This document shows positions 10,078 to 60,229 of a DNA stretch of 64,000 nucleotides, in pieces. The translations under genes were made by a program, and so were the position numbers. Origin of the DNA: Salisapilia sapeloensis CBS 127946 (taxonomy: Eukaryota; Protista; Oomycota); NCBI GenBank assembly GCA_023334545.1, contig JAADVB010000034.1, positions 1 to 64,000 of the forward strand. The letters are read 5' to 3'. How positions within the stretch are numbered: position 1 is the stretch's first letter; every line of letters starts with the position of its first letter. The notes under the pieces were generated by a model. It worked only from the letters and a program-made list of their open reading frames with translations, was not told the origin of the DNA and did not search any database.

Positions 10078-13000
10078 TTACTTGGAATCCCGCATGATAT
10101 GACGCAAATCGACACCCAAGACTTCGGTCGCATGCAGCTGCATCTGCGCCATCGCACGACAAGCACACACTTCCTCCACTTCCGGCAAGAACCGACAGCA
10201 AGTAGCCGCTCGATCGAAGTGACCAAACGCTTCGTTCGTACGTCCCTGCGCAAAGAGTACTTGCGCAATGTCCAAATGCGCCGAGCTGCACCTCTCATCG
10301 ATCACCAGAGCCTGATGGAAGTGAGCAATCGCACGCAACGGATCGTTCGTCGCAACGTACACTCTTCCTGCATTTAAAAACGGTAGCGGACACTTGGGCG
10401 ACAGTTCCAAGGACGTCCAAAAGTGACGCATCGCTTCGGCATAGTTAGCTTGATCCACCAGTACTTCTCCATAGAACAAGTGGACTTCCGGAGACTCTGG
10501 GAACAGTTTGGCTGCAGTGTCAAATACGTCTCTCGCCTGGAAAGTTGATCCGCTCTTGTACAATGCCATGCCGTACGAGACGTGGGTCACTGGCAACGCA
10601 TCGGATCGCGCGATGGCACGACGTAGACACTCCACAGCCTGTTGGTAGTCTGCTGTCAAGAGATGCATCTGGCCCATATGCAGGTAGATGTCTGCATCAT
10701 TAGCATCGACATCTGCTGCTGCATCAAAGCAGGCAGTCGCCTCTTCGATCGCACCGAGTTCCGATAGGAAACCTCCTTTCTTCACTAGCGCGTTCACCGA
10801 TTGTGGCTTGAGAGTCAAACTTTCTTCTATCGTTGCAAGAGCCGTATCGACGTCTCCGGCAACGTATTGGTAGGATGCAAGCATATTCATTGCCATAGCC
10901 TTTTCATCGTTCTCAAGCTCCATGTCAGCTACGAGAATGATATCCTTTTGAGCTTCTTCATACTGTCGTTTACGCTGGAAGTGAATGGCACGTAGCAATA
11001 GATCATGAGGACTTAGTTCAGACGCGTCTGTCTCTGTCAGTTTCGATATGTTCGACGGCAGACTGACAGCATGCTCTGCGTCATGCTCAAACGAGTCAAA
11101 GTAGCTGTCCACGAGCCACTGCGACGGTAGTGTATGCTGCTTTTCCATACCAGCAAAAATATCTTTTGCAGCGTCTCGACCAACGACTCGAGAGACGCGA
11201 TCGATGGTTTCGGCCATGTCAGGCGACCGAGATCCGTCCAATATGAAGGCTGTGACGTAGTCCTGCATCGCTTGCTTCGATGTGTTCTCCTTCTCTTCCA
11301 CTTTCGCAAGACAAGAGTAGGCGCCACTGCTGAATTTATCCACTTGCAGCGCTGCCTTTGCGACTGCCTTGCACGAATCATAGTCACCTAAGGCGAAGAA
11401 GCATCGGGCTCGACCGACGAGCACCTTGCTCATTTCGTGGTGGAAGACAGGTAATTGTGGGAACGCGTTGGCATACGCTTCTAGTGCCGCGTTGTATCGA
11501 CCCATTCGAAGTTTCCGGTCACCGTCTTCTGCAGCGTCGTGCACTGCCGCGATCTCATCCATGTATTCTTCATCTGTCGCAACAGCTCTAGTGAGGAAGT
11601 GCGTGGTCGCGTACAAATGCTCGACAGCATCTTCTCGTGTCTGGACAAATTTCTCTTGTTCCTCTTCACTCATAGCATCACAGAGCGCCTGGAACTGCAT
11701 CTGACTCACCTCTTCTTCTCCCAAGACATTCCACACAGCCTCTGCAACCGCCTGGATGAACGACTTGAGCTGCAACGTACTCAGCTTCTCTCTCGCTGTT
11801 GTCGCTGTGCGTGGAATGTAGTTCAGAGAGTACACGACAGAAGGGTACATACATCCCCACTCTCCATTCTTTTCCTCTTCCTTTGCTTCCTCCACTTCTT
11901 CAAATGCCCATGGAGAACGCTCTTGCACTGCAGTGTAGCATGCGTCCTTCAGACGTTGAGCGACTTCCAACGTGTGCTCCTGACTCCAATCAGGCACTTC
12001 CACGAAGCGTGGAGGGGTGTACAAGGCATCCCACATTTCATTGATCTGACGCACGCTTTCCTTGCAATCTCGATCTTTCTTCTCTTCCACCCACTTGTGC
12101 ACACTCATGGCCATTGCACCTTCGCTCAGGCCTTTGCGATTGTAGACAAGGTCGGAGCACACTTCGATCACGTCTTGATAAAGAGATCCGCACTGCGTCT
12201 TGACGTTGGAAAGCGAGAGTTTACCTTGAAGTGTCGACGGAAAACCGAACGGCGCGAGGACGAACGAGACCATGCGGAAGATGGCACGAGAAGAGTCTAA
12301 AAAGACACTTTTGGAAACAGGGCTGGGCATGTCGAAGAAGCGCTGCCCTTCGACTTCGTACACGACTTGGTTTTCCTCATCGTCATCCGATTCTTCGTCC
12401 TTGTCTTCTTTGGAGCGACCAGCGAGGAATTGGTCGTATGCTTGAATCAGCTTCTCAGAGTCGTACAATGTACTTTTGCATTCTACGTGCTGAGGAGAGA
12501 TGTCGATGTTGCCATCGTCGTTCACAAACGTCAGGTCGCTCGCGAGAGAAAAATTAGACGCGAGAGATGTCGGGAGGGACGTGAGCAATGACAAGGAGAG
12601 AGGAGATACACAAAATGAAACCGAGTCATGTCCTAGAACGGATAGCTGGGTAGCAACAAGAGCCGCTTCAGCGGCATCATCCGAGAAAGTTACGGCTGGA
12701 CTGTCGAATTTGACCCCGATCTTGTCGACTAGTTGCTGCAGATCGTCTGGAGATACCATTGTGTCCCTTAATTCTGCCTCTTCGTCTTCATCATTGAAGA
12801 GCGCTTGGAATGGAAGATTCTGTGCGCCTGGAAGGTGGCCGATAAGCTCTTGGGATTCAGCCATACCAGCAAACACTTCCGAAGGTCGACAGTCAATGAC
12901 TTGAGTGTCTTCATCTTGAACCTGAAGCTCGATGGCACTGTCTAGTACAGTTGTCACTTTATGGGTAGATGAAAGCAGCTCCTTGGAGCAATTTAAAGCA

Positions 13001-14074: not shown

Positions 14075-16947
14075 TTACATTGTATTGGTGGGAATCAAAG
14101 CCGCAAAAGCTTCCAGTCTTGACGCAACAAAGGAAGCGGATGGCCGCTTGGTAGCATCCTGCGACCAACAGTCTTGGATCAAGTCTCTTATCATCTGTGG
14201 AGTATAACCAATAAAATAGGATTCGAAGAGAGTTTATACGGCCTTCTTACTGGCGGGGTTGATCGGGTAAAAGATGGTCGCTTTCGATGTTGAAGGACGA
14301 TTATGGGAATCATTGCAGGGCTCACACCACTGAATGGAGACGAGCACTCGCTAATCTCCCACAATATCACGCCAAGGCTATAAATGTCAGCAGCTACTGT
14401 ATACGCTTGACTTTGCATCACTTCACTGTGAAAGGTAACTTGTTGAGCTATCGTTTGTGTACAAAACAAAGAAATACGTACGGTGCCATCCATTGTAATG
14501 TACCGCGACAACCTGTCATAAAACCCGGCCCAAGTGATGCTGCTTTTCGCGAGATGCCGAAGTCTGTATAGAATATCGGCTTAAGCTGCGGGTAAGTAAA
14601 GTCACCGAATAGTAGAAGAAATACCTGCTAGTTTGACTCTTCCTTCGCTTGTAACCAAGAGGTTCCTTTGACGAATAAGTGTGTATACAGAATATGATCA
14701 CGTGCAGAAACACTTACAGTGATTTCAAGTCTCTGACAAAATGGAAAGTAGTAGATTAGATTGGTATTGGTAAATGAATGAACTGTTCGTTGCACCTATG
14801 GATGATATTGAAAGAATGCAAGAAAGCTAGTCCTTGAGCAGCATCGAGCTGTAGTTTCAACCGGAAGTATGAGTCAAAGCTCGCTGATACATTTAGTATG
14901 TGACACTAACCATCATTTTTGCTCGCAGTGTCCAAGAAGTAGATATAGATGCAAGCCGTTGATCGGCTTGATGTGCATTTTGAATCAAATCGCTGTGATC
15001 AGTATGTTAGACGTACTATGGTGCAAATTTTCGTGAATCTGAGTAATGCTTACAAGAGGGAGTATGGGAGATACTCCAAAGCTATCGCCATTGGCTCCAT
15101 GCAAATCCCAAAGAAGAGAACTAGGGATGGATGCGACCCGAGCGAAGTATGCATTGTTACCTCATTCACAAATTCTCGTTCCGCAGTAGTATTGCCTTGA
15201 CTCATGAATCTACGTGGATAAAATTAAGTTGTATGTCTGCTATAGTCGATATACTGTCAAACGAACGTCTTTAGCGCAATGTCTGTTCCTCTCCACTTAG
15301 CTTTATACACTTGGCAGCTACGTACAAGGCTGTTGAGTTACGTATTAAAATGCAATAAGTCGGAATAAGGATTCCACCTCGTGCCAGCACCTACACATTG
15401 CTCTACAGCAAACTCCTTTTGACATATGGAAGCTGTTGTTAAACTATTCTATCCTCATTTAGGCGATATTTGCATACCGATTTCGACATTTGTCGGATAT
15501 TTCTAGTCTTCAACAAGTTTTTCAGCTGGATGCTTTCAGCCGGTAGCTGACATACAGACTTTTGTAAAGTCTTGTTAATTGCGTCCGTGCTAGGATGAAC
15601 AGGTGCAGCAATTAACCCATAAGCACGGTCGATGAGGCCATTTGCATTTGTGCCATGGGAAAGCTCTTGCTGCAGACTGTTTAAGTCGAGCAAGTCAACG
15701 TTTATTGGCTTTACAGAGGTTAGCTCCTCTGTTGCCTCTACAGTATGAAAGCTAGGTCAGGGAGCTATAAATTCAAGTACAGCTTTGACGAACCGATAAT
15801 GAAGAGACATAATGGCATCGATACTGGTAGTTTAGCTACCAGATCATTCACATCCTGTTCCAGCATATATTCGATTATTATCAATGCTGTCTACACTTGA
15901 GTATATGACTCCTACCTTGTCAGTTTTGATAAAGACCCCGGTATCCGAACTACGAATTGCAAATTGCCTTAAAATCATTTACTCTGATCCTGTGAATACT
16001 TTTATACCTATGAAACTCCTGAAGCGTGATCTCTTTTGGTATCTCTCGAAATATTATTTTGGCTTTGCTTCGGAGTATCGATATACTCATGGTCTTCCGA
16101 TCAATTCGCAAGCGCGCTTGCTCATCTTTCCACTTGAGTATGACGACCAAAGCATCTATTCCGCTATTAAGATTTCAAAGTGCATCGGTATCAATTGTAG
16201 ATTACCACTGTGATTTATCGTATAATAATTGGGTGCGGATGGCGTGAGTTGCTGAGAAGGATTCTCCTGATCTAGTGCCGAAGGAAGCGACTTCTGCATT
16301 GCACTTGCCATATCTTCCAAAAAATCCGTTAAATTGTAAGGTGGAGACCACCCATCTTCCAGCCAAGGCACATGGAGATGCCCGTTATATTGTAAAATAT
16401 CTGGAAGATGCTATGGAAACAAAGTACATTGGCGACTAGGTAGTAAAATACGACGAGTAAGCTTACTTCAAACCCAGAAGTACATGATAGCATAGGTTCT
16501 GCAATTGGAAACTCGTTCGGAAGTCGTATAGCAACTTCCACAGCGTGAGTGGTAGAGTACGCACTTGATAAACTCTACTTTATAAATGCAATGAGCAAGA
16601 ATGATAGAAATGCTTTCAGATGAGTGACAAGTACTCGCGCGCTGGAAAACTTTATTTGCATCGCAACGGCACGCCTTCCATGCATCTCACCTCTTACACA
16701 ACCAATTCTATACCATATACACCACACATGAGCTATTCATATAAATCGTAAAGCTCAAGTGGAGAATGACTTTTGGATGCGCAAGTGAGCGTTGTGCTTT
16801 GCATAGTCCATAGCATTTTGAAGTTCTTGTTGAAGTCTCTATGCATATACTTCGTTCAAAACACTTTAAATGTGCTAGTTGTATTTGATTAGATCACACC
16901 TTGTCTAGGAAGGAGAGAGATCGTGGTCCACTTCCAGAGCTCATCAT
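14075..16947 (-). CDS. Intron-rich protein kinase: UBC-like/UEV domain, PSAP linker, PB1-like domain and TKL kinase (about 20 exons)
   Basis: Manual splicing of about 19 GT..AG introns of roughly 50-65 nt keeps one reading frame. It yields an intact kinase: VGAGTSCQVYKAKWRGTDIALK, EREFVNE, HRDLKSLN, LADFG, GTLQWMAPE, DIYSLGVILWE, CWSQDATKRP, stop at 14075. The first three introns and the start codon are the least certain. Confidence 0.85.
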
Positions 16948-50826: not shown

Positions 50827-52075
50827 CTATTCGTCTTCTAACGCCAATTCATCAATCTGCTCATCAGTCGGAGGTCTTCCAGTGATCAGCTACTTTATCT
50901 GTAAGTGTGTTTCTATTCTAATATGAACAGATAACTTTCGTACCTTGCACACAAAGTGGAGTATTTGAGGCTTCCCAACCTCTTGCAGTGCTCTCGGACC
51001 ATAGGTGAGGATACGTATCTTCTTATGGTCGGCATCCACATCGCTCTTGCCAATCAAGTAGCTACACCCAATGGGTTAGAAACATTCTACTACATGATCT
51101 ATATATCCAAAACCTTTGTGCTTCAAACGTCTTCAAGTGTGCTGCTACATCACCGAGTTGTCGGTGCTTTCGACCTGGCGTAATGTTCGAATCGATGTGT
51201 GTCAATTGGGTCCACAAGTCGTCTTCTGAGAGACTTCTGGATGGAGCACACCAAAGAAGTCCAATGACCATCATCAATAGGCCTCTCACCTTGCTGTTTT
51301 GGTTTTTGTTTAGCAGCAAGAGATGTTCTTGGGAGTTCAGCTTGTTCAAGACCAAGTATGTCTCTCGAGCTGTGTCCTCCATGGCCACGACACGAAAGCC
51401 AAACACTTTTTCAAGACGTTTCTTGGCGCGATGAAAGAAATATCTACATCATGAAGAGCTTCAAATCTCGTTTACTAGTATAAAGGTTACATAGATACCT
51501 CGAGACGTTCTTATATGTCGGGTAGACTTCTTTGCTAATGTCTGTGAAGCGTACTGGCAGCTTTTGCATGCCCTTGTAGAGCAAATAACGCACTAAAAGC
51601 GCTGTCAAGTCTTCCACTTGCTATTTTATTGGTGAAAAAGAGAGCCACAGTTGCATAGCTATATAAAATTACCTTTTCATCTAGCTGGGCGATGCGACTT
51701 GGTACGGAAGGGCTCTTCTTGTCGGCAGTTGCTCTATCTGCCACTTGCGAAGCAGTCGTCTCCACTTCGACAGCGTAGTCAGTCTGTGTAAAGTCGAGTG
51801 ATTCTTCTACTCCATCCTCATCAATGCTGTCGTCTTGGATACTGGATCTGTTGTGGTTGGATGAGCTAGAGCGCGACATTGGCTGCGACTGCTTCATCTC
51901 TTCGTCGCTGTCCACTTCGGTCCCTTCCGTGGCGTCACTGTCCTCATCGCTTCCTATTCCAATCATCAATCTATCTAATTTAAAAGTAGTAGAAATAGCG
52001 TTAAATACGTAAGCGTCGACGTTGCGATCTGGAGGTATTCTCTTGGCTACTACGAAGACGCTTCCTCGGGCTCAT
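50827..52075 (-). CDS. NSE3: MAGE-domain SMC5/6 subunit Nse3 (multi-exon)
   Basis: Acidic N-terminus, FGFRVV, GLLMMVIGLL, LSEDDLWTQL, Q.YL, YGPRALQEV. Confidence 0.78.
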
Positions 52076-52416: not shown

Positions 52417-53652
52417 TCATGCTGGAGCATAAGAACGCTTGTATGCGAGATTTCCGGCAACATAGGTGCTTTGAACCTGAAGTGCATCGTCCAGTAGTAC
52501 AAAGTCAGCGTCCGTACCGACATCCAGTGTGCCTTTCTTGTCTTGGATGCCTAGCGCCTGAGCTGGATGCAGCGTTGCACTCTCCAACGCCATTACTGTA
52601 CTGCAGCCAGTAAACTCAACTAAGTTTCGGGCACACGTGTCCATAGTGGCGATACTGCCAGCTAACGTCGATGTGTTTTTAATAAAAGCTCCGTTCGGCG
52701 TGACGTCCACGAGTCGACCGCCGAGTTCATACTCGCCCATCGGCAGACCAAGCCCATTCATAGAGTCGGTGACGAGAATGAGACCGTTTGGATGGGCTCT
52801 TTGGGCGATAGAAACAGTCGCTGGGTGGGAATGATGACCATCCACGACCATACCAAAGTACGGTGCATTTGTCTTGGATCCAAGTAGACCTACCAAGCCA
52901 GGGTCACGATGATGAAAGCTCCCCATGGCATTAAACGCATGTCTAGATATTCAAATCAGCAAGTGAAAAGATCATAAATAAAGCATAAGCATATACGTGA
53001 GGAGGGTGATGCCGTTCTCTATGGCAGCTTGACCTTCCTTGATCGTTGCCCTGGAATGACCAGCGCTCACAACGATTCCCTTTTGCTTTAGTGCTGCGAT
53101 AGCTTCTGATGATCCTTTCAGCTCTGGTGCTAATGTGATGATCACAACGTTGTCAAGAGATCCATATACGTCCAGGATAGAGTCGATCCCGTTGATCGGA
53201 TCTACCAATAACTCCTCTGGGTGTGCACCTTTGCTACCTTTGTTAATAAAAGGCCCTTCGAGATGTAATCCAATAATCTCTGCCTCGACATCGCTGTCGG
53301 GTGTCCTGGAAGTTGGATCGAATTTGGCCATGGCGTCGGGGTAAAAGTCTTTTGACGACGACACAAGTGTCGGGCAGAAACTAGTGACTCCAGTAGCGAC
53401 AATGTTCTTCTGGACCTTGTGGACATCCTCTTGTGTAACCTCTGGACTGGAAAAATCAACACCAAATCCGCCATTCACCTGAATGTCAATAAATCCGGGT
53501 GCTACAATCGCATTTTTCCCATCCACAACTTCATCCGGAGGTTGTTCCGACGGTGCAATGATCTTACCATCTCGTACCCATAGACTACTCTTGTCGATAA
53601 GATGTCCATGCCGTAGCAAACGGACATTTCGAATTTCTAAAACGTGTGGCAT
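52417..53652 (-). CDS. nagA: N-acetylglucosamine-6-phosphate deacetylase (2 exons)
   Basis: APGFIDIQVNGGFG, GVTSFCPTL, GLHLEGPF, KGAH, TLAPE, SAGHS, THAFNAM (across the intron), HHRDPG, DGHH, VTDSM, LAGS, ATLHPA. Confidence 0.96.
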
Positions 53653-53760
53653 TTGAATGCTTTCAAAGAAGACTTTTTTGTTTCTTCCCTCGAAAAAGCT
53701 ACTTGCTGAACTTCAACTTGGTCCGTCTCAAGTGGTACTCGATACAAAACACAACTCAAA
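53653..53760. promoter_or_regulatory. 108 bp bidirectional promoter shared by nagA and nagB
   Basis: Start codons at 53652 (-) and 53761 (+). The spacer contains ACTTG-N8-CAAGT (53716-53733) and TGAACTTCA (53707-53715) dyads. Confidence 0.7.
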
Positions 53761-54733
53761 ATGCGGCTGATAATCGAGGATGATAAAGCCAAGGTGGCGC
53801 TATGGGTGGCGAATTACGTGCGAAAACGTATAAATGACTTTGCACCCACGAAAGAAAAGCCGTTTGTATTGGGGCTACCGACTGGGAGCTCCCCCCTGCT
53901 TGCCTACAAGAAGCTGATTGAATACCATCAAGCAGGCACACTGAGGTATCCTTTTCTACAGTATTCCCTCTTGCCTCCAATGGTGATCCTGACCTTGACA
54001 CTAGTTTTCAACACGTCATTACTTTTAATATGGACGAGGTATGTCTATAGTTGCATCTTTTCGTCAATTGTTTTTAAGTAGCATGTCTCTAGTATGTGAA
54101 TCTACCAGAGGAGCATCCTGAAAGTTATCATTCGTTCATGTGGAATAACTTTTTCAACCACATCGACATCCAGCGAGACAATGTGCATATTTTAAATGGC
54201 AATGCAGAGGACTTGGATGCCGAGTGTGTTGAATTCGAGCGTCAGATCGAAGCTGTTGGTGGCATTGAGCTCTTCCTTGGTGGTATCGGTCCAGACGGTC
54301 ACATCGCATTCAACGAGCCAGGAAGCTCCCTTTCATCTCGAACGCGTGTAAAGACACTCGCATACGACACGATCGTTGCAAACTCTCGTTTCTTTCATAA
54401 TCACTTGGAAGAGGTGCCGAAGATGGCGTTGACTGTCGGTGTCGGAACAGTAATGGATGCTCGTGAAGTCCTCGTTATCATCACTGGCATTGCCAAATCC
54501 TTTGCTCTCTACAAGGTCGTGGAAGAAGGTATTAATCATATGTGGACCGTCTCCATGATACAACAACATCCAAAGGCATGCATCGGTACGTCCTCTTATT
54601 TGACGATAGCATACTTACCTACTAACTACGGAAATGTGTAGTGTGTGATGAAGAAGCGACGATGGAACTACGCGTGAAGACCGTCAAGTACTTTAAAGGG
54701 CTCAGTGACACGCACGCAAAGCTACTAGAGTAG
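53761..54733 (+). CDS. nagB: Glucosamine-6-phosphate deaminase (4 exons)
   Basis: [82 protein letters not shown]. Confidence 0.97.
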
Positions 54734-54892
54734 TGCCGAAAGGAACAATGCTAGAGGCGTATAACCTTCTCGGCAGTCGGATGATCAAATCTCAGCTAGC
54801 CGATGGATACAATGCAAACCCAGGATAGCAATCTCCTTGAACGAATACATTCGTGCAATATAAAAAGTCGCCAAGCAATCTAGTCTACCTAC

Positions 54893-56609
54893 TTACCAGA
54901 CAAAGTGGTGCTGGTCCGCCTCATCCGCTTGACCCACTTTGCTCTCATCTTCCGTCTGCTTCAACTGCCGTTCTGGTTGAGATCGCCACATGACCTGTCG
55001 ACCTTTACGTTTCTTTGGTGCTTGCATGCTCCGTTCCATGGACTTTTTCATCCGCTCTTCGTACATCTTTTGCTGCTGCGCAATGCGTTCTTGTCGTACT
55101 CGTTCCCGACGCTCCTTTTCTTTCTCCTTCTCTGCTTTGACGACAAAGTCTTCTGGCATTTGCTCAATGGCACTGAGCAAGTCTTCCAGCCTTGCTTCCA
55201 AGTCTGTAAGCATGTACAAGGTCGACGAGTTCGACTCTGCTTCGAATCCACACTTCTTGTACACTTCCAATACACGATCCTGCAAGTCTTTTAACACTTT
55301 CTCCTGTGCATTCTCCATGGAACTGCCCATGGATCGTTGCTTAAGTTGTTGCATCTTGCTGCTCTCCAACGCGATTTGGTTCTGCAGTTTATCAACGTTC
55401 TGCTGCAGAGCAGACGTCTTCTTATCCATAGCTTTCTTCGTTTCCTGGAACGTCTGCTTGAGCTCTTCCAATGTCTGCTCTGTGTCTTGACTGTTCTGAA
55501 TTAGGAACAGGTTGCTCTCTTCCAAAGCTGTGAATATATCCAAGAGCTGCTGTGGATGCTGAAAGTACATGGGAATCTCTTCATCCTCTTTTTCCACTGT
55601 GATTGCGTCGAGGTTGGGCATGGGAGGAAGTTGAGCATCACCTTTCAACGTCTTGCCTTTGTCCCTCTTTTTGCCTTTGCTTTCCGGTCGATCATTTTCC
55701 ACCCTCTCACGCTCTTCCGCCTCTGCCATGACTGCAGCTCGTTGCGTCTCATATTCATCCATCACCTCCTGACGTCGTTGCTGTAACCTAGCTTCATACC
55801 GCTCTTGCCTTTTCTGAATTTCCTCTTGAACGTACTCTGGTGGTGTCAAGTCATCTAGGAAAGCCTTGTATTGGAGACAATCTTGTAGCTGTTCACTGAG
55901 TTTGGTAATCTCGCTCTGGACACCCTGGATTTGCTGGTTCAGTTTTTTGATATCTTGCACCTTCTCAGCCTTGGCTTTCGTCTCTTTCTCGGCGATTTTA
56001 ATCGCGTCATGTGCTTTTTTATCATTTTCCTTGAGAAACGCGTCAAAGCGGATGGCGTCCTCTTCCAACATTAATTCGCTCTTTTTCAACGCATCTTCCT
56101 TCAACTGAGCTTTTTCCTCCAATTTTCGAATCTCTTCTCGTTTCGTGTCAAGTGACATTTGGACGAGAAACATTTCACGCTTCTTGGCGATGAAGTCCAC
56201 CATATTTTCCTTGTTGCGAAGCCGGTCACTCGCGACGCTTGCGCTAGCAGCTGCAATGAGACCTCGCATGCGTCTGTCAGAGGTCTTCGAACCTGCTACA
56301 TCCCCGGGCTACATGAGACATCCGTATAAACGATCGAGTTAGAAAGCGATATCGGATGGCATGCAATGCAGATCGTACAGTATCGTCAGTATTAAATCGC
56401 TGGATCGTGCCGATTTTGGAGGACTGTGTGGTCTTTTCATGGATTTTCAGGCTGGAAGTCTTTCGCTTTTCCTAATACCAGGTGGCGGTCAGATGACATG
56501 TAGTAACCTACGAGCCGTAAGATGTTACTTCGTCCTTGCGCTTCCTCTCAGTCTCTTTCAACCGGAAGACTTCTTCATCAGATGGCAGTGTGAAAGGATT
56601 TTGCTCCAT
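54893..56609 (-). CDS. CFAP100: Cilia- and flagella-associated protein 100 (CCDC37/MIA1-like; multi-exon)
   Basis: Upstream exon MEQNPFTLPSDEEVF, FIAKKREMFLVQMSL, LEEDAIRFDAFLKEN, MYFQHPQQLLDIFTALEESNLFLIQNSQ, KGRQVMWRS. Confidence 0.88.
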
Positions 56610-57448: not shown

Positions 57449-60229
57449 ATGGCAGGGTACAATCCGAACACAGATGAAGTGGCGCCGTCGGCCATGTCCC
57501 ATGAAGAGATGCTCGAGCACCAAATGAATTTACACCAGCGCATCCAGCAGCAGATGCAGATGCAGCGGGAGATCACTTCCCAGTTTGGCAGCACCCGAGG
57601 GTCTTTTTCCTCTTCTTTAGGTAAAGTAGAGCCGGACCTTGGTGACAACGTCTTCGACATGCTGGATGACCTCATTCTCATTCCGTCCGGCGCGATGCCT
57701 CCAGAGCGAACTTCCTTGTCCCACAAACAAGCCGATCTTGATGATAACACGAGCAGCTCTGGACGCGACAGTCTCGCTGACATCCTCGAGTCGCTCGACT
57801 TGGACGAGGGAGATACGTTAAGTGATGGCAACCGATCGCTGGAGAACGATAGTCTCAAAAGCCCGAGTGTGGATGAATCATTCGATGATATCGATCTAAG
57901 CGATGTCGATGACGACTTTGACGACGATGGAAGTGACCTTGGTGTTGACGATGAAGATGAAGAGGACGAAGTGGTACAGGATGATACGAGAAGCAGCGGA
58001 AGTAGCGACAATGACAGCGACGGCAGTGGACCAATTACGACATTTGCTACGAATTCGGAGAGCGAGACGATCGTAGACAGCATTGATCGTAGTCGCAAAT
58101 CTTCATTCAGTCGTAAATCGTCGCTATCATCCATGTCGATGTCCCAGAGCGGAAATAGTTGTACATTGGTGTGGGAAGGAGGTCTCTTGGGTATGAGGCT
58201 GCGCATGTCACACTCGAGAGGTCTGCCGGTCGTATCTAAGCTTACTGGTAGAAGTGCCATCGTGGGCATCCATCTCGTGGATGTCGGTGATTTGCTTATG
58301 CAGATTGGCAACGTCAGTACGCGTGATCTGGAGTTTATGGAGATGATCGACTACCTGAAGAACGTGACCAAGCCATGTAAACTCGTCTTCCGACGTTTAC
58401 ACGCCGATCCAATGGCTGTACGACCTGTTCAGCCGACGATCACCAGCTCCATCGGACTTCAATTGGCTGCTAAAATCGCTGAAATCACAAATGGAGATCC
58501 GGATAAAGCATCTTCCACTCCTCTCGTCAAGTTAGAAGACAAGTACGAGGTCAAGTGGATGGACGGACCGCTCGGCATCAGTCTAATCGCGAGTAAAGAA
58601 GTTGCCTATCCACTAGTGACGCGTATCACTGGCAAGAACAGATCACCGCAGGTACAAGACGTCCAGCCAGGTCATTATTTGGTTCAGATTGGATCGTACA
58701 ATACGGCGGACGGGAACTTTAACGCTGCGATCAAGTACTTGCAGAAAGTGAGCAAACCAGTGGCCTTGTACTTTTGTCCAGGCAATAAAAAGGTGTCAAC
58801 TCGTCCGGAATTGATGGCAGATGAGTTTGAACATGTTTGGGAAAAGAAACAACCGCTGAGCTTTACGGTCCGTCCGGATGACGTTGGTCGGATCATCGTT
58901 GCAGACCTAGGAAGTGCCAAGTCCATTAAGGTAAAGGCCAAGGGAAGCAATAACTTATCGGCTCAAGTGGACAATGGCGACTATATCGTATACATCAACG
59001 ACGACTCGACCTCTGGCATAACCTTCCACGATGCCTTGCTCAAACTACGCACAGCCAAGAGACCGCTCGTGATTCGCTTTAAGAAGAACCCGCCGCCAGC
59101 TCCTGTGCTTCCAAAGCCAACTCCCGCGCTTCCAAAGCCAGCTTCCGTTCCTCCAAAGTCTTTCACTGCTGCACCTGTGGCAGCACCACCGGCCCCTGTG
59201 GAGAAGAGCAAGTCACAACCTGCTGCGTTAACTTCATTGACACGAGGTGGGAGCCAGAAGACAGAGGTAGGGAAGTCATCAGATCCGGTACAGGCAGACG
59301 TAAAGCCACAGACAGCTCCTATGCCTCCACCGAAGAAGGCAAGCAGCCTTGGCGATGAAAAGAAGGATGCATCATCAAGACAGAATGCCGTACGACGTCA
59401 GCAGAGTGCAGACAAGCCCTTGACGTCCGTTCACCAAAAGGAACCTGCTAATGCTGCAGAGAAGCCACGTAGTCGAGAGCGACCGCCTGCACCTCGAAAG
59501 CCTGTAGAAAAAGCGGAGGAGGTATCACGAGCGAGTAAACAGGGGCATGAGACGCCAGTGCGACAGTCTCCTCGGAACAGCAGTGAGCGAGAACGGACGC
59601 ATTCACATGGCCGGAGTTCGTCACAGTCGTCTTCATCTGCTGATGAAGACGAATACGAAGTGGTGTGGCCGGAAGGAACGGCGTTGGGACTGACGTTGCG
59701 TGTGCATCCGACGACAAGATTTCCGGTCGTTGCTCGAGTCACAGGTACGAGCAATTTCAAGAACATCGAGCACGTTGCGCCTGGTGACGTCCTCTTCGCT
59801 GCGAACAACAAGAGCATTGTGCCCCAGCCAAAGTTTAAACAGACGCTGGAGAACCTAAGCAAGCTGCCCAAGCCAGCCGTCCTCCGGTTTCGACGTGCAC
59901 GGGCGATGGTGACATCACCGCACGGGTCGTCGGAAGGTAGTTCGGAAGGTGGTGGATCGAGAGGATCGAGTCTTCGAGAGAACGAGTACGAGCTCGTGTG
60001 GAAGGAGAGTGTAAGTCTAGGTCTGGTCTTCAGCGCAGATGGAGACGTGCCGAAAGTGACCAAGGTGGATTATGATGCAGGGAACCCAGGGCTGAAGAAG
60101 GTGGAACAAGGAGATGCGCTCACGTGGATTGGATCGCGTGAAATTCGAGGAGCATCGTTCCATTCATCGATGGCAGCTTTGAGAGCAGTGAAGCGGCCTG
60201 TTGTGTTGCGGTTCCAGAAGCGGACTTGA
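57449..60229 (+). CDS. Multi-PDZ scaffold protein with an acidic N-terminus and Pro/Ser-rich linker (intronless)
   Basis: Five repeats begin CTLVWEGGLLGM, YEVKWMDGPLGI, FEHVWEKKQPLSF, YEVVWPEGTALGL and YELVWKESVSLGL. Each is followed by GD/GH-x-L, and each ends in K/RPxxLxF. Confidence 0.78.
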   Translation: MAGYNPNTDEVAPSAMSHEEMLEHQMNLHQRIQQQMQMQREITSQFGSTRGSFSSSLGKVEPDLGDNVFDMLDDLILIPSGAMPPERTSLSHKQADLDDNTSSSGRDSLADILESLDLDEGDTLSDGNRSLENDSLKSPSVDESFDDIDLSDVDDDFDDDGSDLGVDDEDEEDEVVQDDTRSSGSSDNDSDGSGPITTFATNSESETIVDSIDRSRKSSFSRKSSLSSMSMSQSGNSCTLVWEGGLLGMRLRMSHSRGLPVVSKLTGRSAIVGIHLVDVGDLLMQIGNVSTRDLEFMEMIDYLKNVTKPCKLVFRRLHADPMAVRPVQPTITSSIGLQLAAKIAEITNGDPDKASSTPLVKLEDKYEVKWMDGPLGISLIASKEVAYPLVTRITGKNRSPQVQDVQPGHYLVQIGSYNTADGNFNAAIKYLQKVSKPVALYFCPGNKKVSTRPELMADEFEHVWEKKQPLSFTVRPDDVGRIIVADLGSAKSIKVKAKGSNNLSAQVDNGDYIVYINDDSTSGITFHDALLKLRTAKRPLVIRFKKNPPPAPVLPKPTPALPKPASVPPKSFTAAPVAAPPAPVEKSKSQPAALTSLTRGGSQKTEVGKSSDPVQADVKPQTAPMPPPKKASSLGDEKKDASSRQNAVRRQQSADKPLTSVHQKEPANAAEKPRSRERPPAPRKPVEKAEEVSRASKQGHETPVRQSPRNSSERERTHSHGRSSSQSSSSADEDEYEVVWPEGTALGLTLRVHPTTRFPVVARVTGTSNFKNIEHVAPGDVLFAANNKSIVPQPKFKQTLENLSKLPKPAVLRFRRARAMVTSPHGSSEGSSEGGGSRGSSLRENEYELVWKESVSLGLVFSADGDVPKVTKVDYDAGNPGLKKVEQGDALTWIGSREIRGASFHSSMAALRAVKRPVVLRFQKRT

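Follow-up and report, generated by a model that had tools for sequence, protein, structure and literature searches.

A head-to-head nagA–nagB gene pair in Salisapilia sapeloensis and its conservation across oomycetes

The nagA and nagB genes and the spacer between them

The window analysed here, 64,000 nucleotides from the start of a Salisapilia sapeloensis contig, contains two genes of amino-sugar catabolism, nagA on the minus strand and nagB on the plus strand, which lie head to head with 108 bp between their ATG codons. Each is present as a single copy in the 22.4-Mb assembly, and both are intact, spliced and of eukaryote type. Homology searches, trees and alignments were run on single exons.

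The nagA gene has two exons, giving 1182 nt of coding sequence and 393 amino acids. Exon 1 (53652–52997; 218 codons plus 2 nt) encodes the N-terminal half of a GlcNAc-6-P deacetylase and matches TIGR00221 positions 1–214 (E 2.2e-36). Following a 54 nt GT..AG intron that was read from the sequence (52996–52943), exon 2 (52942–52417, with the stop codon at 52417–52419) encodes the C-terminal half and matches positions 218–380 (E 1.4e-39). Taken singly the exons scored 125.6 and 136.2 bits; the six-frame match to the whole gene scored 256.7 bits across positions 1–380, above the cut-off of 225.65. Among proteins of solved structure the best match is human AMDHD2 (7nut), to which exon 1 aligned with E 8.6e-46 (motifs QVNGG, HLEGPF, GAHP and AGHS) and exon 2 with E 2.8e-55 over residues 232–404 (HAFNAM, DGHH and VTDSM). 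Four motifs of the amidohydrolase fold (HLEGPF, GHS, HxFNAM and TDS) align identically with the human enzyme, and within them we take the Glu of HLEGPF, the His of GHS, the His of HxFNAM and the Asp of TDS to be the metal-binding or catalytic residues, after Escherichia coli NagA. By family match the predicted product is NagA, N-acetylglucosamine-6-phosphate deacetylase (EC 3.5.1.25).

The nagB gene has four exons, totalling 804 nt and 267 amino acids, whose translations follow one another along oomycete NagB proteins and leave no gaps. Exon 1 (53761–53945) covers TIGR00502 positions 1–61 and residues 1–61 of three such proteins (P0001, P0005 and P0006). It is followed by a 59 nt intron (53946–54004) that starts in a U12-like manner, with GTATCCTT, and has CCTTGAC close to the 3′ end. 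The 34 nt exon 2 (54005–54038) carries the catalytic NMDE motif and corresponds to residues 63–73. Intron 2 (54039–54092; 54 nt, GT..AG) separates it from exon 3 (54093–54585), which encodes the core of the GlcN-6-P deaminase at residues 74–237. After intron 3 (54586–54641; 56 nt, GT..AG), exon 4 (54642–54733, stop codon included) tiles onto residues 239–267 of P0001. Exon 3 by itself exceeds the TIGR00502 cut-off (253.9 bits against 236.9), exon 1 contributes 65.3 bits, and the six-frame match reached 260.5 bits. Of the proteins with solved structures, human GNPDA1 is the best match (1ne7; exon 3 E 6e-81). Active-site motifs are kept, namely NMDE in exon 2 and a 12-residue stretch of exon 3 that is identical to the human protein. 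The product is thus annotated, from its profile match, as NagB, glucosamine-6-phosphate deaminase (TIGR00502, EC 3.5.99.6). The first-pass annotation had proposed a deacetylase and a deaminase catalysing consecutive reactions, and the two family matches agree with the identities that it gave.

Exon 3 of nagB is 77–85% identical to oomycete NagB proteins, whereas S. sapeloensis NagA sits on a long branch, with 45–60% identity to other oomycetes where NagB reaches 78–85%. The nagA intron has the same position and phase in Pythium oligandrum, Phytophthora kernoviae, Saprolegnia parasitica and Aphanomyces euteiches. The position of nagB intron 1 is common to Pythium and Phytophthora, where the intron begins GTGCGC or GTGCAT, and this intron is absent in Saprolegnia. 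Intron 2 is absent in P. oligandrum and Ph. kernoviae, in which exons 2 and 3 are contiguous.

The spacer can be placed at 53653–53760 because neither open frame has an alternative start codon upstream; this check and the gene models uphold the divergent arrangement and the 108 bp between starts reported in the first-pass annotation. It has a GC content of 0.38, presumably holds back-to-back promoters and both 5′ untranslated regions, and is the shortest of seven oomycete nagA–nagB spacers, which range from 108 to 838 bp. Across these seven, no motif was kept in position or orientation. Two words were considered as cis elements and rejected: the hexamer GACGGA/TCCGTC, found in five of five oomycete spacers where 0.07 were expected from mononucleotide shuffles, and a purine-rich 8- to 10-mer found in three of five. 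Measured from either ATG, neither word has a constant position or orientation and, for the hexamer, the long spacers make chance matches likely.

Conservation of the pair and inversion of the unit

A head-to-head nagA–nagB arrangement was found in seven oomycete loci: those of P. oligandrum, Ph. kernoviae (two assemblies), S. parasitica and A. euteiches, and those on two further oomycete contigs from Logan. In all of them the nagA intron occupies the identical position. The adjacency is therefore not confined to one genome, an outcome that the first-pass annotation had allowed for, but was seen in every oomycete lineage sampled. The pair is ancestral to these lineages, which include both major orders, and is not peculiar to S. 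sapeloensis. The same annotation had suggested an independently assembled or ancient eukaryotic cluster; as Peronosporales-type and Saprolegniales genomes both carry the pair, 'ancient' holds at the level of the oomycetes, and the novelty attached to the suggestion does not.

Novelty is lowered because the synteny of the two genes has already been described. Ah-Fong et al. (2017, BMC Genomics, PMC5635513) reported nagA and nagB as neighbours in Pythium ultimum and five other Pythium species, and the relation was repeated by Ah-Fong et al. (2019, PLoS Pathog, PMC6493774). The gene pair is real, and it is largely known already. What is added here is its extension to the Saprolegniales and to one Phytophthora species, making it ancestral to both major orders. 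The two papers also state that the genes are missing from all sequenced Phytophthora and are not linked in fungi (PMC5635513, PMC6493774). These two statements need correcting.

The surrounding genes differ between oomycete lineages while the head-to-head layout is kept. When open reading frames from 40 to 64 kb of the window were compared with the Saprolegniales loci, nagA and nagB were the only ones with matches. Two neighbours serve as synteny anchors on the nagB side. A DUF4200 coiled-coil gene (54893–56269, minus strand; PF13863 E 4.6e-37) lies tail to tail with nagB, and a multi-PDZ gene (57449–60229, plus strand) is 67–68% identical to a 983-aa gene of P. oligandrum. The P. oligandrum counterpart of the DUF4200 gene (72% identical) lies tail to tail with nagA instead, a layout shared by the two Logan contigs. 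The 983-aa PDZ counterpart sits beyond DUF4200 in P. oligandrum, and a PDZ gene is on the same side in one of the Logan contigs (L018). Because DUF4200 adjoins nagB in S. sapeloensis but nagA in P. oligandrum, the comparison indicates a two-gene inversion, in which nagA and nagB turned round together between neighbours that are conserved and were not separated. Through this local inversion the pair behaves as one unit. It is very probable that the S. sapeloensis genes are the orthologue of an ancestral oomycete unit, in which a NagA/AMDHD2-like and a NagB/GNPDA-like gene diverge from a short shared spacer.

Partner genes and function

We searched for the genes that accompany nagA and nagB elsewhere. 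Near the pair, no locus showed a GlcNAc kinase, a transporter, a GH20 hexosaminidase or an Ndt80-type regulator. Nor did any of these emerge clearly from the assembly, which, at 22.4 Mb in 1365 contigs, may not be complete, such that blank searches are not proof of absence. The first-pass annotation had likewise seen no GlcNAc kinase in the window, and a hexokinase-family GlcNAc kinase was found neither there nor in any oomycete locus examined. Hexokinase_1 and GH20 gave no match in this fragmented 22.4-Mb assembly. No MFS transporter gene was listed within 8–10 kb of the pair in the oomycete loci examined. NDT80 (PF05224) gave no match in the possibly incomplete assembly, and neither did the search controls. 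For a NAGK-type kinase (PF01869), the sole match was sub-threshold, to a sugar-kinase-like gene on contig C649 whose only matches, BcrAD_BadFG and FGGY_N, were both under their cut-offs; it was rejected as a GlcNAc kinase. The only kinase candidates in the assembly are two unlinked ROK kinases, neither of which was assigned this role: the best match of one (C510) was the fructokinase ScrK, and the other (C1289) matched generic ROK glucokinase models only. The assembly does encode chitin synthase and GH18 enzymes.

Together, NagA and NagB would convert GlcNAc-6-P to fructose-6-P and ammonium. The GlcNAc-6-P would be supplied by a putative unlinked kinase from GlcNAc that is either taken up or recycled. 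Since two core promoters and two 5′ untranslated regions must fit into the 108 bp, the two genes probably receive shared regulatory input, and co-regulation from this spacer is an inference. The annotation gives S. sapeloensis the two predicted committed steps of GlcNAc catabolism, which are reported to be missing in Phytophthora infestans (PMC6493774). A part played in parasitism is speculative, its one indirect support being that P. oligandrum can use GlcNAc and chitin for growth whereas Ph. infestans cannot.

The strongest alternative is that the pair is a housekeeping module for amino-sugar salvage or hexosamine homeostasis, like animal AMDHD2 and GNPDA, whose adjacency would last for no other reason than the difficulty of breaking up a tight head-to-head pair. 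The module would recycle GlcNAc from minor chitin in the wall and from the organism's own glycoproteins, or would use NagB in the reverse direction, towards UDP-GlcNAc, with neither GlcNAc-induced co-regulation nor parasitism. For Py. ultimum, expression of both genes is reported from ordinary media and from tubers, without added GlcNAc (PMC5635513), which fits this account, and a role in wall synthesis was also put forward in PMC6493774. Other points in its favour are that chitin synthase and GH18 are encoded while GH20, a linked kinase and a linked transporter were not found in our searches, that human enzymes are the nearest relatives with a solved structure, and that the spacers share no conserved motif. 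Against it, gene presence tracks growth on GlcNAc or chitin in the one comparison made: P. oligandrum grows on both and Ph. infestans does not (PMC7720654), the latter being reported to lack both genes (PMC6493774). Moreover, the pair outlasted both the rearrangement of its flanks and its own inversion. We consider the housekeeping account possible but not the favoured one.

A bolder reading is that the unit has been held together by selection acting on a bidirectional promoter, common to both genes and responsive to GlcNAc, that operates without an Ndt80-type regulator, or that the unit is an old eukaryotic pair shared with fungi by descent or by transfer of the whole. If so, the clean two-gene inversion would be the footprint of that constraint. 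We regard this reading as rather unlikely.

Origin of the pair and comparison with known systems

The oomycetes formed one group in the NagB tree (SH-aLRT 93), in which S. sapeloensis stood beside Pythium. The four fungal sequences formed their own clade (98), as did animals with choanoflagellates (93), and both were apart from the oomycetes. The NagB tree therefore gives no sign of a bacterial, fungal or animal origin. Environmental NagB sequences were also found, and these are nearest to oomycete NagB. For NagA, sampling was by word search with a length window that left out full-length oomycete and fungal proteins of 402–547 aa. In a small exon-2 tree a split with SH-aLRT 88 placed a single fungal sequence with the oomycetes rather than on the animal side, a split that is uninformative on transfer, as the tree held three groups, one fungus and no other stramenopile.

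These trees bear on whether the divergent unit moved whole between fungi and the oomycete ancestor by horizontal transfer, or is an older eukaryotic pair retained by both. The head-to-head order also occurs in Candida (NAG1/DAC1; PMC8869657) and in a chytrid, Polychytrium, where the spacer measures about 2.5 kb, and the lone fungal NagA falls on the side of the oomycetes in its small tree. However, the fungal NagB clade is separate from that of the oomycetes, no adjacency was found in a second chytrid (Entophlyctis) or in a choanoflagellate, and the orthologues reported in Blastocystis, a stramenopile, fit vertical descent (PMC5635513). Dikarya and other stramenopiles lay outside the sampling, and with three groups the NagA split is uninformative. 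Such a shared history with fungi is improbable. Bacterial contamination, or recent transfer of a bacterial nagBA operon, might be suggested by the frequent adjacency of nagA and nagB in bacteria (PMC5635513) but is refuted by the introns and the synteny and can be set aside almost entirely, given four GT–AG introns across the two genes, divergent rather than co-directional transcription, flanking oomycete genes syntenic with Pythium, solved relatives that are closer in human (NagB, E 6e-81 vs 3.6e-67 in bacteria; NagA, E 8.6e-46 vs about 1e-26) and a published analysis that finds transfer from bacteria poorly supported (PMC5635513). The first-pass annotation had taken the spliceosomal introns in both genes as evidence against contamination and the genome as of oomycete type; the four introns and the oomycete flanks bear out both.

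Among known systems, animal AMDHD2 and GNPDA1/2 include the closest solved structures by sequence to S. sapeloensis NagA and NagB. They are eukaryote-type enzymes of amino-sugar salvage and hexosamine pathway control and, to our knowledge, the AMDHD2 and GNPDA genes are unlinked. The choanoflagellate locus likewise differs from the oomycete pair in having no nagA/nagB adjacency. The bacterial nagBA and nagE-nagBACD operons link the same two enzymatic steps, as in S. sapeloensis, but they are co-directional, polycistronic and intronless, whereas the oomycete genes are divergent and separate and contain four introns. Bacterial nag operons are under NagC or a GntR-type repressor.

Fungal clusters serve the same pathway. 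Candida albicans has its deacetylase and deaminase genes side by side and divergent in the NAG regulon (HXK1-NAG1-DAC1), as in S. sapeloensis (PMC8869657), and the cluster of filamentous ascomycetes (Trichoderma) consists of hxk3, dac1, dam1, ngt1, ron1 and nag3 (PMC4950302). These clusters carry a GlcNAc kinase and, in the filamentous species, also a transporter, a GH3 enzyme and an Ndt80-like regulator, none of which was found linked to the pair in S. sapeloensis. GlcNAc induction has been demonstrated for the fungal clusters.

The nearest counterpart is the Py. ultimum pair, PYU1_G006885 (nagA) and PYU1_G006886 (nagB), which encodes the same two enzymes from adjacent genes; the accessible text of the two reports gives the adjacency without orientation or spacer (PMC5635513, PMC6493774). 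Relative to the published Pythium pair, the arrangement now extends to Ph. kernoviae, Saprolegnia and Aphanomyces and, compared with the Pythium-type locus, the two-gene unit of S. sapeloensis is inverted relative to its flanks. The pair opens no long-standing question, and it would offer a small, tractable model for oomycete bidirectional promoters.

Gene models of the nagA–nagB pair

The divergent, spliced pair described in the first-pass annotation, with 108 bp between its start codons, was borne out in every detail by gene models and profile matches. Both genes are intact and spliced in the window, and each is single-copy in the 22.4-Mb, 1365-contig assembly. On the minus strand, nagA was read from the sequence as exon 1 (53652..52997), a 54-nt GT-AG intron (52996..52943) and exon 2 (52942..52417, including the stop). 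The two exons, searched separately, matched positions 1–214 and 218–380 of the NagA model TIGR00221, and a six-frame search of the assembly gave 256.7 bits for the whole gene against a cut-off of 225.65. Among solved structures, human AMDHD2 (7nut) comes nearest, with E 8.6e-46 in exon 1 and 2.8e-55 in exon 2. In these alignments, the stretches that carry the metal-binding and catalytic residues of NagA are identical.

On the plus strand, nagB was read as four exons (53761-53945, 54005-54038, 54093-54585 and 54642-54733). Their translations tile without gaps on residues 1–61, 63–73, 74–237 and 239–267 of oomycete NagB, the missing residues being two split codons. Exon 3 alone scored 253.9 bits, exceeding the TIGR00502 (NagB) cut-off of 236.9, and has human GNPDA1 (1ne7; E 6e-81) as its best solved relative. 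The ATG-to-ATG spacer is exactly 108 bp, as neither open frame contains an upstream start codon. Individual exons, rather than the joined spliced proteins, served as queries in all searches, alignments and trees.

The first nagB intron (53946-54004) has a U12-like look, starting with GTATCCTT and carrying CCTTGAC near its 3′ AG. The corresponding introns of P. oligandrum (L003, about 10185-10237; starting GTGCGC) and Ph. kernoviae (L004, about 5686-5758; starting GTGCAT) have ordinary U2-type ends, and Saprolegnia nagB has no intron there. The U12-like features would reflect either a type conversion in one lineage or a chance resemblance. Flanking the pair on its nagA side is a minus-strand ORF (51062-51406) with a MAGE homology domain (PF01454, E 1e-7), which may form one gene with an acidic ORF at 51535-51969.

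Conservation and inversion of the pair

Comparison loci were contigs encoding NagB or NagA proteins returned by a word search. The pair proved not to be peculiar to the window genome: nagA and nagB lie head to head in all seven further oomycete loci compared, with spacers of 184 bp in P. oligandrum (L003), 255 bp in two Ph. kernoviae assemblies (L004 and L005), 654 bp in S. parasitica (L006), 838 bp in A. euteiches (L014), and about 180 and about 370 bp in two oomycete assemblies from the Logan archive (L017 and L018). The lone nagA intron splits the same codon in the window and in all of these loci, which shows that these genes descend from a common ancestor with a eukaryotic history. When ORFs from 40-64 kb of the window were compared with the Saprolegniales loci, only nagA and nagB matched and none of the flanks did; the flanks in Saprolegnia and Aphanomyces are also unlike each other. 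The pair must therefore have existed before the two major oomycete orders diverged, and it has persisted while the synteny around it was lost, so that the term ‘ancient’ used by the first-pass annotation holds within oomycetes.

The pair is thus ancestral in oomycetes, and has already been noted in the literature; our increments are minor. Adjacency of nagA and nagB was published for Py. ultimum and five other Pythium species (PMC5635513) and reported again by Ah-Fong et al. 2019 (PMC6493774), who also noted orthologues in Phytopythium, Saprolegnia and Aphanomyces; novelty is lowered as the earlier annotation had foreseen for published synteny. The 2019 paper gives both genes as missing from all sequenced Phytophthora, a claim contradicted by the intact head-to-head pair in both Ph. 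kernoviae assemblies.

In P. oligandrum, L017 and L018 the gene order is PDZ, DUF4200 (+), nagA (−), nagB (+), with nagA tail to tail with DUF4200. In the window DUF4200 (54893-56269, minus strand) instead meets nagB, again tail to tail, and the PDZ gene follows on its far side. Comparison across 52417-56269 therefore shows that the unit is flipped between conserved neighbours, still head to head. Inversion of the intact pair would be consistent with the unit being under selection, although this is weak evidence since a breakpoint within a spacer of 100–800 bp is unlikely anyway.

The genome had been called oomycete-type, rightly so, because the best NagB relatives (77–85% identity) are from Globisporangium, Pythium, Phytophthora kernoviae, Saprolegnia, Aphanomyces, Achlya and Thraustotheca, and because the DUF4200 and multi-PDZ genes match those at the corresponding place in P. 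oligandrum (72% and 67–68% identity, respectively). Within the class, the NagB tree and this synteny favour the Pythium/Phytophthora side.

NagA evolves much faster than its partner: whereas NagB is 78–85% identical to its oomycete relatives, NagA shares 45–60% identity with its oomycete counterparts, roughly as much as with AMDHD2 of insects or humans. In Saprolegniales the NagA frame runs stop-free into an ankyrin-repeat C-terminal extension of ∼140 residues (L006:2139-2570 in S. parasitica; L014:5481-5906 in A. euteiches), giving lengths of 547 and 543 aa. This predicted NagA-Ank fusion is lineage-specific, as the extension is absent from NagA of the window, Pythium and Phytophthora.

Predicted pathway and regulation

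The two intact genes, lying back to back, encode the predicted enzymes for GlcNAc-6-P to GlcN-6-P and for GlcN-6-P to Fru-6-P and ammonium. Two core promoters and two very short 5′ UTRs have to fit into the 108 bp, and for this reason nagA and nagB probably have regulatory input in common. When k-mers were compared across five spacers, none kept its position or orientation.

The main alternative is a constitutive role in salvage or hexosamine homeostasis, as in the animal orthologues. Published data showing that the Pythium genes are expressed without GlcNAc are in its favour. Gene presence correlates with growth on GlcNAc, which favours the catabolic reading. We regard the alternative as possible but rather unlikely. 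On GlcNAc and chitin, P. oligandrum grows and Ph. infestans does not (Liang et al. 2020, PMC7720654).

The first-pass annotation had found no GlcNAc kinase or transporter in the window, and none turned up close to the pair at any of the loci compared. Hexokinase_1, GH20 and NDT80 gave no match in the 22.4-Mb assembly, in which GH18 genes and one chitin synthase were found. A PF01869 kinase candidate was rejected: the single match, to a sugar-kinase-like gene, was sub-threshold, and the only matches of that gene, BcrAD_BadFG and FGGY_N, themselves fell below cut-off. The assembly holds two ROK kinases unlinked to the pair, one of them ScrK-like. The second (contig C1289 of assembly G000, 14586-15254; about 1960-2773 in the fetched locus L020) is a multi-intron gene with a Cys-rich zinc motif, CGCKQQGC, and matches generic ROK glucokinase models only. 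This gene is the strongest, albeit unproven, candidate for the missing kinase.

Phylogeny and comparison with fungal clusters

In a 61-row NagB tree, with the window represented by exon 3 only, a branch (SH-aLRT 93) separated the window, all named oomycetes and two marine-protist transcripts from the rest. Four sequences from early fungi grouped in a clade of their own (98), as did animals together with choanoflagellates (93); the backbone was unresolved. A second A. euteiches nagB (P0026, L013) is flanked by SAC3/GANP and Paf1 genes and has no nagA in its neighbourhood; both paralogues of this species fall inside Saprolegniales, and the unlinked copy therefore arose by local duplication. A small tree of NagA exon 2, covering three groups with oomycetes as the sole stramenopiles and so too few to test transfer, placed the window, on a long branch, with the other oomycetes and a single chytrid, apart from animals (88). 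The trees thus lend no support to a bacterial, animal or fungal donor; a unit transfer involving fungi, or an ancient origin in common with them, is unlikely.

Adjacency was not seen at the loci examined in the chytrid Entophlyctis and the choanoflagellate Salpingoeca. The genes are linked in the chytrid Polychytrium (L007), with a spacer of about 2.5 kb. In Candida, NAG1 and DAC1 have been known to be oppositely oriented since Kumar et al. 2000 (cited in PMC8869657), with a bidirectional promoter suggested. These two cases correct the statement, in PMC5635513, that nagA and nagB are unlinked in fungi. Larger GlcNAc clusters occur across Ascomycota (PMC4950302). No counterpart of their linked kinase, transporter or Ndt80 regulator was found beside the window pair, which we therefore class as working like the fungal cluster rather than as a member of it: the oomycete pair is analogous, but much smaller.
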